Assembly: GCF_006345805.1 (NCBI RefSeq)
Contig: NW_021833279.1
Coordinates: 1 to 64,000, forward strand
Reading direction: 5' to 3'
DNA: 64,000 nt
Origin: Octopus sinensis
Taxonomy: Eukaryota
The translations under genes and the position numbers were made by a program. The notes under the pieces are model-generated. The model searched no databases. It was given only the letters and a program-made list of their open reading frames with translations, and was not told the origin of the DNA. Every line of letters begins with the position of its first letter. Within the stretch, counting starts at the first letter, position 1. Shown one piece after another: positions 9,447 through 58,700 of this stretch.

Positions 9447-9941
9447 GTGTGGTTGTGGACATTTTATTCTCATACTGGTTGGCGGAAGTAATCTCTTGTT
9501 CTACCCAACGATCCCATTTGGGCCAATATACTACAGAAGTTGAAGAAGGAGGTTACATTTATGGTAGTGAATAGAACTAAATTTTTAACCCAACTAATAA
9601 ACTCTTTTCTTTTGCTAACGCTGAATCAATTCATCAACACAACGTTCCGTGCGCTGTCTGTTTGACACGACAACCCGCTGTTGTTATAGGTTACCAGCCA
9701 GGACAAAGTGTTACCCTGGTTGGACAGCTGAGTATTCGGGATATTTGATGACCGAGTATTATAAGCATAAGGGCAGACATGAGTATGTGTGTGTGGATTA
9801 TGCACCAGAAGCTGATCCATCGGGTTACAGAAACGAAGATGGAGTTTAATATATTTCGTTCAGGCTGCTTGTGGTTCATTGCCATGTCCACCGTATGTCA
9901 ATGGTCGAGAATAACCTGCGTTGTGTGGCAGTAAATACTGA
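9447..9941 (+). CDS. Copy 1 exon 4, short-chain collagen C4-like (NC1-type) domain; several small indels
   Basis: ttctAG acceptor; HNVPCAVC, LPARTKCYPGWTAEYSGYLMT, EYVCVD and CGSLPCPPY motifs; 495 nt versus the 500 nt consensus. Confidence 0.8.
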
Positions 9942-9995
9942 TCGAATTTACATTCGTTTCTATATGAAAATTTATGTCGGCGAATCATAAAATAT

Positions 9996-10005
9996 AATAA
10001 ATAAA
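9996..10005 (+). promoter_or_regulatory. Polyadenylation signal
   Basis: AATAAA ~55 nt after the stop, followed by a GT/T-rich tract; same position in copy 4 (46674) and copy 5 (58760). Confidence 0.6.
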
Positions 10006-11366
10006 GCACATATACGTTTCTTGTAATTGTGTTTCGCAATATTTTATCCGACTAATATATGTCGTTAAATAAGTTTTCTGCTACAAGTTTTTTCAGAAAA
10101 TATCCAAACGAAACAACAGAGAAGTCCATAGAATGTGACAAATAGCTTAACAAAACGATGTAATCCTCAAGGAATGATTCTAGATACATTGTATGAGGTT
10201 CCAGTTTATCAAATTTAAATGTGAAATAAAATGATGATTCGTTTTAATGTGTGTTGTATTTCGTCTTAAAATGAAAACAATCCCACAAATGAAACACCTC
10301 CGTACAATATATCACCCTTTCATGATCAATCTTCAGAAACACGATAAAAGCTTATAACTAACATCACTAAATCATGATGGTTTGATAAAAAATACTCCCA
10401 TACGTATCATTGTAAGTACAATTGATTGCGATGAAAGCTCTGCAATCCAATCGCGGATATTACCTAATAAAGGATATTTGAATATCCACTGAAGAATACC
10501 ACAAAATGTTGACTACCTAACTACTTGTCAGGTTACTAAACACATTGAAGTTTTCACGAAACACTTTCGACAAGTTACAGTACACGTCCCACGATCAACT
10601 ATTTTCAACCTACATTCACATATTCCCGCTTTTCTATGAAAATCACAAGCACAAACCACGTCGTCACATTACACACGCAGCCTCTCATCGTTCCCTGAAC
10701 ACTGATGTGCCAAAAGAAAATATGAAACCACCAAAAATATGAGTAGACTTCAGGAACAGCATCAACCGAATCTACAGCAACACCACAAAACATCAAGTTG
10801 ACAAATTATCTCCGTCTGTACGTAAAACTATCAAACTCGCAGAAGGGAACTTGCTTCGAGATACATGCATACAATAACTGTAACACACATAAACGACTTA
10901 GTAAGGAAGGAACACCACTTATAAAAATGCATTAGGTGGAATCATGCAACATGTTGATCTTTCACACTCTAACCCAGCATGATTGCTCCTTGTATGTGGA
11001 AGTTTTGTAGAATGGCTGCCAGCTAAACGAAGGTATCCGTGGAAAGAGGGATCTGTGGTGGCAGCACGTTTTTTGTCCGTTAATTGCGTGCCATAAGAAT
11101 GCTCGATTGTGAAAAAGCTAGAGAAAAAGAATAATAATTAAGTAATATGAAAGCACGAAATGCAAATGGACAAATGAATATATGGAAACATTCAACATGG
11201 CGTTTCCAGTGACAGTATTAGCGCTCAGTATTAGGCATAAGCAATTTTTTAGGTTCGTTAAAAATGTGATAATGGCATATTTCAACTCTAAATGCAAATT
11301 CTGTGCAAAAAGTTGCAAAAACAGCATGTCAGTCCAGTGCTCTCCCTATCGGGTTCCAGTCAGTCG

Positions 11367-56478: not shown

Positions 56479-56551
56479 AACCCGGTCTCGGATCATTGTA
56501 TACCGGTGGGGCAGAACAACTTGTCCTCCTTATTCAAACTTGTATATGACG
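56479..56551 (+). CDS. Copy 5 exon 3
   Basis: 73 nt, two single-base losses versus the 75 nt consensus, AG/GTTAGT. Confidence 0.75.
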
Positions 56552-58197
56552 GTTAGTATACTTTATATTTCTCAACTCTCATTCTTTTTTTGTCTTTCTC
56601 TTGTTCTCTTTTTATACCTCTCATTCTCTCTTTTTGTTGCCTCCCTTTCTCTCTCACCCTCTCTCTCACGCACATGCACACACACTCACCCTTTGTCGGG
56701 TTGTTTGACATATACATTCTCAAATCCTCTTATGGTATGTCACGTTTCAAACGTCTATACCTGTAGACTATACAGACACTACACAAAACTGCTTACTCCT
56801 TTGTAGGTATTTGGTCAAATCAGAATATTATATGTTGTCTACTACGGAACAAGTGAAAAGGAGGTTGTCTAACCACAGAATATAGATATCTCTACGTTAA
56901 ATTAGAGACAGGGGCTGGACTGAAAACCACCATGGCGATCAAGAATTTCAGGCTGACCAGCTTTGGATTGTAGATATCAAATACCGAGGCTGCTAACTGG
57001 TGATCAATTGTACTGGCTACGGATGGTGGTACTGTACGTGAGTGACCAGAGCTGAATAGTGGCCACTTGGCTATCATTAACTAGAGTGCCCAGTGATCGT
57101 AGGTGTGGGCTAAATTGAAAAGAGTCTTTTAGAATTGATGACAGTGACTGTAAATGGTTATTGGAATGAACGCACAATGTAGAATGAGGACTGGACAAGC
57201 CACATATTGTAACTGATGGAAAAAGCTAAGGACTGTATTCATTAAGTAAAATAGAGAGAGACTAAATATTAGTGAGAGAACAGAGTACAGAATGCACTTC
57301 TATTCTTCCGCCTCACCGAAATCATCCTATCGCTAAAACCTTGTTCTTTTCATGCACCACATCACCTCATTAATTATCCAGTATATCTTTGTAAGGTAAT
57401 TCCGAAACTTCCAATTCAAACTGATGCTACAAACCCCGCTTCGGCAATGAACCTCACATTTCCTAAAAATGTTCTGAATCTGCTCTCTATAAACCCTACA
57501 ATATCCTTTATCGGTAGCCCACTCCGCCGTCCATTCATCTTAAGCACAACGCCATCACTGAATCTTATAATTTTTCCTCCCACCTCGTTTCTGCGTATTG
57601 CATGAAAAAAGTCTGTGTGATCATAACGTCTATGTAAGCCTGCATCTCGTCGTCTCCCCTAGTGTCCTACTCAAACCACCAACAATTTCCACCACCCAAA
57701 ATATCCCCGTTCACACGTGAACATCTTTTCATTTCGGATAAACACGTGTGCATGCGTTAAAAAATCTTCTTTTTCTCCATCTGGTGACACCCACCGAAAA
57801 ACACCTACCCCATGCATACACATAATCCACGTCGTAACCACAAATAGGTACCCGTATACACAAAACATATATATATATATAAATGGAGTTGTATGAAACA
57901 ATCGTACCGCATTATCTCTAGATATCCTTGTTGCTTATTACGATATATATATAATATATATATATATATATATATATATATATATATGATGATGAGAAGG
58001 CAAATGCACAGCTACGATCTCATACATACCTCAACACACAGCTTGCACTCACATAAACACTAACATATACACCACAATTCCTTCACACGCGAGTAAACAT
58101 GACTCCTTTAAATGAAAAATTGTAATGAATGTTTCCGTTATTTCATATATAAGTTTGCTTAACATCTTTTTACTTGATATATTCTTACCAATTGTAG

Positions 58198-58700
58198 GTG
58201 TGGTTGGTGGACAAAAGTATGACCAGACAGGTGGCGGAAGTAATAATCTCTTATGCCTACCTAACGATCCCATTTGGGCCAATTATACGACAGAAGATGA
58301 AAAAGGTGGTCACATTTATGGCAGTGAATATCAACTGGAATCCTACCCAACTAATAAAATCTTTTCTTTTGCTCACGCTGAATCAATTCATCAACACAAC
58401 GTTCCGTGCGCTGTCTGTTTGACACGACAACCTGCTGTTGTTATGATGTTACCAGCCAGGACAAAGTGTTACGACGGTTGGACAGCTGAGTATTCAGGAT
58501 ATGTGATGACCGAGCGTCATAGTCATAAGGGCAGACATGAATATGTGTGTGTGGACTATGCACCAGAAGCTGATCCAGCAGGTTACAGAGACGAAAATGG
58601 AGTTTTATTATATTTTGTTCAGGCTGCTTGTGGTTCATTGCCATGTCCACCGTATGTCAATGGTCGAGAATTAACCTGCGTTGTGTGCAGTCAATATTGA
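58198..58700 (+). CDS. Copy 5 exon 4, short-chain collagen C4-like domain, fully open
   Basis: 503 nt (one extra Asn codon), VVGGQKYDQTGGGSNNLLCLP...RELTCVVCSQY*. Confidence 0.9.

Follow-up and report, generated by a model that had tools for sequence, protein, structure and literature searches.

How can the genes of a tandem array stay alike over most of their length and still each carry its own version of a few short loops? This question is raised by a window of 64,000 nucleotides (nt) of octopus DNA (contig NW_021833279.1, positions 1 to 64,000), with a G+C content of ~39%. The window covers part of a large tandem array of an Octopus genome. It holds five tandem units of ~10-12 kb each, with mutual identity of 87-93% in a self-BLAST comparison, and the gene of each unit ends in an exon of ~498 nt (exon 4) that codes for most of a cysteine-rich domain. 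The best protein matches were sequences named 'short-chain collagen C4-like' or 'uncharacterized' from Octopus sinensis, O. vulgaris, O. bimaculoides and Argonauta hians; translations of the last exon reached 86-94% identity to the best octopod proteins in the protein searches.

An earlier inspection of the letters alone (the sequence-only reading) saw in this exon hypervariable loops on a near-invariant scaffold and proposed diversifying selection on a ligand-binding face. We observed that the pattern is real. We give a probability of about 0.6 to an explanation in which the loops are old cassettes, kept diverse by selection and reshuffled among the paralogs by gene conversion, while the frame and the flanks were homogenised.

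Variable patches in the last exon

For comparison with the window we took from O. sinensis 0.3 Mb of homologous sequence (CM016876.1, loci L001-L005), which holds 16 complete intact copies of exon 4 and one truncated copy (16/17 intact). The combined set consisted of 21 copies, taken from the window and from an O. sinensis array that spans at least 2.6 Mb. The patches were set on the window copies alone. P1 was defined as the five codons after VVGG, P2 as the five codons after MT, P3 as TEVEEGGY and its variants, and P4 as the five codons after GSEY; the four patches together make 23 of 165 codons (14%).

All amino-acid strings quoted in the sequence-only reading were found on the plus strand of the window. 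The P1 and P2 strings are given with their positions in Table 1. P4, after GSEY (or GSVY), appears as QLDLY, QLQLY, EITF- and QLESY, and P3 as TEVEEGGY, TEVEKGGY, TEGEDGGW, TKVEEGGH and TEDEKGGH. Copy 1 also has a P1, (Q)FYSH, beyond the earlier list; it is read when two 1-bp indels are allowed, and its nucleotides are identical to those of the O. sinensis counterpart. A fifth, weaker variable patch was seen at exon codons 128-136 (Y-R-N-E-D-G-A-V/L-L).

The nonsynonymous pairwise differences were concentrated in the 23 patch codons, with 57% of them in the window set and 51% among the 16 O. sinensis paralogs. When blocks of the same size were placed at random, none of 20,000 placements reached the patch share of the window or of O. 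sinensis. The per-site variability profiles of the two sets were correlated with r = 0.80. Across the 21 copies 87 of 142 scaffold positions were invariant, compared to only 1 of 23 in the patches. The description of hypervariable loops on a near-invariant scaffold was thus borne out by the counts.

The combination of the four loops was unique in each of the 21 copies, with 13-19 variants per loop. Among octopod sequences with a parsable motif (30-38) we counted 26 variants of P1 and 32 variants of P2. The composition of the two main loops was strongly biased: P1 and P2 consist to 47% of His, Tyr, Trp and Phe (25% His, 14% Tyr), and aliphatic residues make up 6% compared to 44% in the scaffold.

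The two main patches had been placed at equivalent spots of the two repeated halves of the domain. A profile-profile alignment of the halves (hhalign, E = 3.7e-4) agrees with this placement, with P1 opposite P2, and it puts P3 opposite the fifth patch. The stretch of exon 3 from the first Cys to LVYDG is variable as well (PPYSN, PTNSS, SPYSS and PRNSS across paralogs, e.g. in the two intact exons 3 of Table 1). Codon 91 of exon 4 (A/P/D/T/R), which corresponds to this stretch in the C-half, varies too.

Divergence inside and outside the patches

Divergence was followed by pairwise comparisons of flanks and by a 30-nt sliding window over copies 1, 2, 4 and 5, which are alignable. For all 21 copies together, an alignment of intron and downstream sequence (400-500 bp) turned out to mix in non-homologous sequence (proportion of differing sites, p, up to 0.63), and it was replaced. 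The main patches made peaks of p = 0.41, 0.29, 0.24 and 0.20, with a modest 0.09 for P3. The background was 0.06-0.07 in the non-coding DNA over 1.2 kb downstream and 0.03-0.07 across most of the exon outside the patches. Most patches are therefore several-fold more diverged than their neutral surroundings, and drift of unconstrained loops alone is insufficient as an explanation. The downstream flank of copy 3 was not homologous to the flanks of the other units (p ~0.32).

Nonsynonymous and synonymous divergence (dN and dS) were estimated by the Nei-Gojobori method with bootstrap intervals. We added a tree-free count of codon and amino-acid states, since pervasive recombination invalidates a single tree; both estimators are crude compared with codon site models. 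By Nei-Gojobori, the scaffold had dN of 0.04-0.055 and dS of 0.165-0.19, and its dN/dS of 0.25-0.29 indicates clear purifying selection. In the patches dN was 0.40-0.41 and dS was 0.41-0.50. Compared with the scaffold dS, the patch dN was higher by a factor of 2.2-2.4 (bootstrap 95% intervals 1.31-4.27 and 1.39-3.43).

The sequence-only reading expected dN/dS above 1 at the variable sites and named a ratio not above 1 as an argument against itself. Within the patches the ratio was 0.82-0.97 by Nei-Gojobori (intervals include 1) and 0.61 by the tree-free state count, so that on this point the reading formally fails, as judged by crude estimators applied to a recombining array. The ratio does not exceed 1 because the synonymous sites of the patches are also ~2.5-fold more diverged. 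The patch dS was 2.5-2.7 times the scaffold dS (bootstrap intervals above 1), and the synonymous distance between codons for the same amino acid was 0.305 in patches versus 0.13-0.15 elsewhere. Such raised synonymous divergence points to old, reshuffled cassettes and not to a recent diversification driven by point mutations.

Age and reshuffling of the loop cassettes

Three window copies have ortholog-like partners in O. sinensis (copy 1 with L001c, copy 3 with L002f, copy 4 with L001b). In these pairs the flanks differed by 2-3%, while the patches differed by 0, 2 and 5 nt of 69, respectively. Copy 1 had 93% amino-acid identity to its counterpart (P0001/L001c), with identical patch nucleotides; copy 3 had 94.5% identity to P0008/L002f, with the 2-nt patch difference; the nearest relatives of copy 4 were O. 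sinensis L001b and O. vulgaris P0005/L006. The best non-coding matches of the window to O. sinensis and O. vulgaris (GCA_951406725.2) had 2.3-3% mismatches. Summed over the three pairs, the proportions of nonsynonymous and synonymous differences (pN and pS) were 0.034 and 0.041 in the patches, and 0.021 and 0.053 in the scaffold. Since the ortholog patches are nearly unchanged, the loops are not changing fast now, and their diversity predates the split of the species. One P2 variant, TAHNGH, is common to O. sinensis and Argonauta.

The codon tables showed synonymous markers linked to loop variants; for example, P1 was found as TGG-TAC-GAx-CAC-ACA and as CAT-TAT-TCC-CAT-ACT. An identical cassette, GAG-TAT-TAT-AAG-CAT...CAT-GAG (EYYKH), stands beside four different P1 loops. 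The four-gamete test was failed by 724 of 1128 informative site pairs, with a minimum number of recombination events (Rm) of at least 28 in 495 nt, and the pairwise homoplasy index (PHI) gave p = 0.0005. Distances between copies in one patch were uncorrelated with those in another (Mantel r from -0.06 to 0.23). In a Sawyer-type run test 20 of 171 pairs had p <0.01, and 3 pairs were globally significant. The neighbours L002a and L002b, for instance, are identical over nt 272-495 and have 26 differences over nt 1-271.

Assembly noise and intactness of the copies

The patch differences had been described as substitutions, distinct from an indel-type noise elsewhere. Both parts of this description hold. 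The patches of copies 1, 3 and 4 recur almost base for base in the O. sinensis and O. vulgaris assemblies, so these are true substitutions, and an artefact as the source of the substitutions is largely refuted.

The indel noise is real and patchy. Over 3 kb of the copy 1 region, compared with the O. sinensis counterpart, we counted 90 indel events versus 69 mismatches; of these indels, 80 have a length of 1 bp and only 25 lie in homopolymers, and the distribution of the indels is even. The region of the copy 3 exon had no indels over 1.5 kb, and copy 4 showed a local burst of them. Compared with the O. sinensis and O. vulgaris counterparts, an excess of 1-bp indels was seen at window positions 3866-13900 and 45825-46575 (e.g. 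269 gap openings versus 255 mismatches in 8.5 kb), with other parts clean; such patchiness points to uneven polishing of a long-read assembly. A ratio of indels to substitutions near 1 is far above that of real divergence, so assembly errors are the most likely source of the frameshifts (10-11) of copies 1 and 4.

The other copies carry single lesions. In exon 4 of copy 2, a 2-nt deletion at codon 162 brings a stop three codons early, with the loss of the last Cys. Copy 3 has a single in-frame stop, TAA at codon 135, and its exon is free of indels. The exon 4 frame of copy 5 is open and intact (166 codons, with one additional Asn codon), and its lesion is a frameshift in exon 3. Each of these three may be real or an error. 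Truncated or internally deleted copies of exon 4 were also seen in polished assemblies (O. sinensis L005 8558-8947, named L005a, and O. vulgaris L006 5162-5654), so the array has some real pseudogenes beside the intact genes.

Protein family, architecture and predicted fold

Octopod proteins mapped back onto the window gave four exons per unit. The encoded protein has ~255 residues, with a short N-terminus, one hydrophobic signal-anchor, a linker of ~45 residues and a β-rich domain with ten cysteines. Exon 1 codes for MDFAQLSRNISQRY followed by a 19-residue hydrophobic segment (residues 15-33, Kyte-Doolittle mean 1.8-2.7), exon 2 for a charged linker, NRFISKKSLDDKPDDTPK, and exon 3 for ..GSLYTRWGRTTCPPYSNLVYDG with the first strands of the N-half of the domain. 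Exon 4 codes for the remainder of the domain and has all four to five variable loops. This order of segments suggests type II anchoring with an extracellular head.

The family search gave 259 matches. The octopod 'short-chain collagen C4-like' proteins had E from 1e-95 to 1e-74, and members from bivalves, annelids, amphioxus and cnidarians had E from 1e-48 to 1e-40. In a 65-sequence alignment the ten Cys of the domain were all invariant or at least 90% conserved, and the two homologous halves could be aligned. The HSQ motif was absent from the octopus domain, and a conserved NYT sequon precedes P3. The domain belongs to the spongin, or 'short-chain collagen C4', branch of the collagen-IV-NC1-like domains. 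In spite of the database name, the octopus proteins are collagen-less: no Gly-X-Y run of at least 5 was found in any frame of the window and none of at least 4 in 29 octopod proteins, and only 3 of 120 homologues had a run of at least 6. A peptide of an O. vulgaris family member was detected in the ink proteome (PMC10142993).

Many homologues came from ENA 'metagenome' assemblies as single-ORF (open reading frame) proteins of 150-200 residues. A bacterial origin of these was considered and rejected: in the one contig that was checked (ctg4402 of ERZ25069866, L008, 1.58 Mb) the ORFs are short and thinly spread, with fragments of RVT and DDE, as if a gene finder for prokaryotes had been run on the genome of a eukaryote.

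The AlphaFold2 model of O. sinensis P0008 (the counterpart of copy 3), made with the 65-sequence alignment, was an all-β domain with a predicted local distance difference test (pLDDT) score mostly above 90. In it P1 occupies the loop of one hairpin (104-115) and P2 that of the equivalent hairpin (203-213), and strand 135-139 is bordered by the loops of P3 and P4. The composition of the loops and the NYT sequon fit an exposed, extracellular and functionally shaped surface, and the variable loops may together form a binding surface.

In a Foldseek search of the PDB, collagen IV NC1 gave the only matches with E <0.001 (14 chains, E from 2.7e-5 to 3.8e-4, probability 0.96-1.0). The template modelling (TM) scores of 0.18-0.24 and root-mean-square deviations of 16-19 Å indicate that this similarity is local and topological, with no global superposition. 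A Pfam scan of the exon-4 proteins found no family at E <=1, including Pfam C4 (PF01413), and a hidden Markov model search of the PDB sequences with the 65-sequence profile gave no NC1 chain at E <=10, only chance matches. A position of P1 and P2 at the interface of the collagen IV NC1 hexamer, suggested from the position of the Met93 cross-link, was dropped, as Met93 lies in a different segment.

Weighing the explanations

The explanation that we prefer can be laid out in a few steps. The array would evolve by duplication together with frequent gene conversion or unequal exchange, i.e. by a mixture of birth-and-death and concerted evolution. Conversion or exchange would homogenise the framework, the introns and the spacers and would also move loop cassettes among the paralogs, while selection would keep the cassettes different, leaving nearly every paralog with a loop combination of its own. 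The cassettes would be older than the divergence of the Octopus species sampled here and would by now be stably inherited. Islands that persist against homogenisation are what selection for paralog-specific function predicts, and we infer that selection, rather than a barrier to conversion, maintains them. The array would be a germline-encoded repertoire of binding specificities.

A simpler account needs neither selection for diversity nor recognition: tolerant surface loops would drift neutrally on a constrained, disulfide-rich scaffold. It would explain the local patch dN/dS of ~0.6-1.0, a patch pN near pS in the orthologs, and variability of the same positions across the animal-wide family. 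Neutral sites, however, cannot exceed the local neutral divergence, and the divergence of most patches is 3-7 times that of the scaffold and of the neighbouring non-coding DNA (for P3 the excess is much smaller); the patch dN exceeds the scaffold dS, with intervals above 1. Homogenising conversion should also have erased neutral differences along with the flanks. The loops have a strongly biased composition, poor in aliphatic residues, and are kept between species within an ortholog. Relaxed constraint alone is therefore an unlikely explanation. The proposal of the sequence-only reading, in which point mutations in the loops of a ligand-binding face were fixed fast after recent duplications, also appears improbable to us. 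The excess of patch dN over scaffold dS, the many multi-nucleotide codon changes and the unique loop set in every copy would all follow from it. But then the synonymous divergence of the patches should not be equally raised, even between codons of the same amino acid, with synonymous markers that travel with the cassettes. Nor would one expect identical cassettes in paralogs that differ elsewhere, loops hardly altered since the species split, or a local ratio that stays at or below 1.

We see very little chance that the pattern comes from a noisy or collapsed assembly, or from an array of dead pseudogenes that gather changes. All five window copies do have lesions (10-11 indels in copies 1 and 4), in the copy 1 region indels outnumber the mismatches to the O. 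sinensis counterpart, and L005a and the L006 copy are truly broken. On the other hand, the noise consists of indels and the patches of substitutions, the patches of three copies recur nearly base for base in other assemblies, the same positions vary in both sets, and in O. sinensis all but one of the 17 copies are intact, with a scaffold dN/dS of 0.29. Just as remote is a targeted mutational mechanism, i.e. programmed germline or somatic hypermutation, or templated micro-conversion at the loops, acting independently of selection. It would account for synonymous and nonsynonymous sites both raised in sharply bounded patches and for the cassette-like exchange, and each spacer does have a (TG)n tract. 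Against it, ortholog loops stay near-unchanged over 2-3% of genomic divergence, which excludes a germline mutation rate that is high at present; neither a template repeat nor a dedicated enzyme turned up in passing, in work with no search aimed at them.

Several observations weigh against old cassettes kept by selection as well. The local patch dN/dS is not above 1, so classical positive selection is not demonstrated, and both the Nei-Gojobori and the state-count estimates ignore recombination and multiple hits. In the ortholog pairs the patch pN of 0.034 is near the pS of 0.041-0.053, on tiny counts (5.5 and 1.5 events). Across the animal-wide family these loops vary as well (consensus 'x' in the 65-sequence alignment), so that their positions are intrinsically tolerant. 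Sequence divergence can itself block gene conversion, and islands could persist for a while even with no selection. Finally, every window copy carries at least one lesion, and the function of the window copies rests on these lesions being assembly errors.

Units, spacers and gene models

The positions of the exons, patches and spacer tracts are given in Table 1. Exon 1 of gene 4 was not found in the window by the mapping of octopod proteins. The (TG)n tracts occupy the spacer between the last exon of each gene and exon 1 of the following gene, and each is a possible recombination-prone element. They recall the sea urchin Sp185/333 genes, which are flanked by microsatellites.

Table 1. Positions of exons, variable patches and spacer tracts in the window
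Feature	Position	Strand	Remarks
Copy 1 exon 4 (last exon)	9447..9941	+	P1 9462-9473; P3 9533-9556; P4 9574-9589; P2 9754-9768 (EYYKH); 11 small indels vs O. sinensis counterpart
Copy 2 exon 4	20828..21325	+	P1 20842-20856 (QHYTQ); P3 20917-20940; P4 20959-20973; P2 21139-21153 (EHNGH)
Copy 3 exon 4	33659..34158	+	P1 33673-33687 (QHFSH); P3 33748-33771; P4 33790-33804; P2 33970-33984 (EHYND)
Copy 4 exon 4	46119..46612	+	P1 46133-46147 (QWYEH); P3 46208-46231; P4 46250-46261; P2 46428-46442 (ASSVH); 10 small indels
Copy 5 exon 4	58198..58700	+	P1 58212-58226 (QKYDQ); P3 58290-58313; P4 58332-58346; P2 58512-58526 (ERHSH)
Exon 3, gene 1	7415..7493	+	..PGLGSLYTRW.RT.CPPYSKLVYDG; frameshift
Exon 3 equivalents	near 17742-17795; 31989-32066; 44339-44416; 56478-56542	+	Frameshifted; intact; intact; frameshift, respectively; octopod protein mapping
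Exon 2	4662..4715	+	NRFISKKSLDDKPDDTPK linker
Exon 2 equivalents	28483-28533; 40291-40338; 53769-53816	+	
Exon 1, gene 3	23980..24120	+	MDFAQLSRNISQRYSISSLIAFGVLLVLTIVILHQDSRIGK..; short N-terminus and 19-residue hydrophobic anchor
Exon 1 equivalents	12786-12932; 49338-49469; 61547-61698	+	Gene 2; gene 5; next gene, respectively; octopod protein mapping
Degenerate (TG)n tracts, one per unit	11602..12377; 22987-23553; 38095-38635; 48292-48914; 60373-61128	.	540-780 bp; ~1.65 kb 3' of exon 4

Among the spacers, only the one from copy 3 to copy 4 has long (TGTA)n arrays (36112-36961 and 37516-37926), and exon 1 of gene 4 was not found there. Within the intron that separates exons 3 and 4, a stretch of 1.3 kb has opposite orientations in units 2 and 4 (17987-19281 versus 41030-42322, 88% identity on the opposite strand). 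At the start of the window, positions 31-1881 are their own reverse complement in self-BLAST (96.7% over 1871 nt, two inverted arms of ~925 bp). This palindrome may represent either a foldback element or an artefact of long reads, and the noisiest part of the window adjoins it.

A short ORF, MKALQSNRGYYLI...NTLKFSRNTFDK, lies ~0.5 kb 3' of exon 4 in units 1, 2, 4 and 5 (10431-10574, 21807-21955, 47101-47252 and 59188-59337); it was not found in unit 3. In the NCBI model of O. sinensis LOC118767013 (P0001) this downstream ORF serves as the first coding exon. With their spans of 32-86 kb, several of the public models for genes of the array therefore look like cross-unit read-through chimeras. 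The order of paralogs in the window differs from that in the O. sinensis CM016876.1 region, thus the array is also rearranging.

Comparison with known systems

The sequence-only reading called the locus a candidate for an undescribed system. The protein family itself is known, and its genes are annotated in Octopus under automated names, so for the family the term does not apply; the array and its loop diversity are undescribed in the literature that we found. A full-text literature search gave no paper describing the octopus array, the collagen-less anchored architecture, or the hypervariability and mosaicism of the loops.

The closest relatives by sequence are the spongin short-chain collagens. 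The spongin NC1-like domain (Exposito 1991; Aouacheria 2006; Fidler 2017) shares seven Cys with collagen IV, has three of its own and has no HSQ (PMC5395295); domains of this type were modelled without the domain-swapping region (Fidler 2017, PMC5395295). The octopus proteins are direct sequence relatives with the same two-half C-terminal domain, likewise without HSQ and with ten Cys, a likeness in number and not a comparison of positions with PMC5395295. They differ in that the defining Gly-X-Y segment is missing, with the N-terminal hydrophobic anchor in its place. The large tandem array with hypervariable, reshuffled loops is a feature of the octopus genes of which we found no report.

Collagen IV NC1 (PDB 1LI1, 1M3D, 5NAX; Pfam C4) likewise has two homologous Cys-rich β subdomains, whereas the octopus domain has no Pfam C4 match, no attached triple helix and a poor global superposition. 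Collagen IV NC1 is a recognition module that directs chain-specific assembly (PMC5395295), which gives a precedent for specificity encoded in this fold.

By analogy, the proposed mechanism would stand closest to that of the clustered protocadherins and of the mosaic immune families of invertebrates. In clustered protocadherins, concerted evolution spares the regions that determine specificity. The octopus array resembles them as a tandem array of probable membrane proteins, with frame and flanks that appear homogenised by conversion, with short diverged islands, and with a large expansion specific to the octopus lineage. The NC1-like heads, however, differ in fold and in topology (a putative type II anchor with a single small head), and the splicing of variable to constant exons is absent here, as each octopus unit has its own exons 1-4. 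The expansion of octopus protocadherins is described in PMC6339937.

Among invertebrate immune genes, several diversified multigene families are built from mosaic variable elements: Sp185/333 (SpTransformer) of sea urchins, the FREPs of snails and the VCBPs of amphioxus. The likeness extends to clustered genes, microsatellite-rich spacers, variability confined to defined elements, mosaic combinations and near-unique copies. The folds are unrelated to the octopus head, and the octopus loops are stable between related species.

Possible implications for cephalopod recognition families

Cephalopods build complex tissues and nervous systems but have, to our knowledge, no adaptive immunity, and we know of few lineage-specific diversified receptor families in them beyond the protocadherins. 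A bolder idea, which we offer as speculative and rather doubtful, is that the array is a second large, conversion-shaped recognition family of octopus. In it, anchored collagen-less NC1 heads would carry His/Tyr-rich loop cassettes that set specificity, either as a non-self repertoire (for microbes or glycans) or as a code for self-recognition and assembly. In the latter variant NC1-type heads would pair selectively, as the chains of collagen IV do. If this were true, an ancient assembly module of the extracellular matrix would have been re-used as a diversified receptor.

With its loop variants on a single scaffold the array makes a compact natural collection, and the binding of the variants could be tested directly with recombinant proteins. 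If the heads were not binding modules, the locus would still be a clean example of islands of divergence in an array under concerted evolution. If they are, a domain of basement-membrane assembly can become a germline repertoire, and gene conversion together with selection can sustain dozens of loop combinations over the long term.

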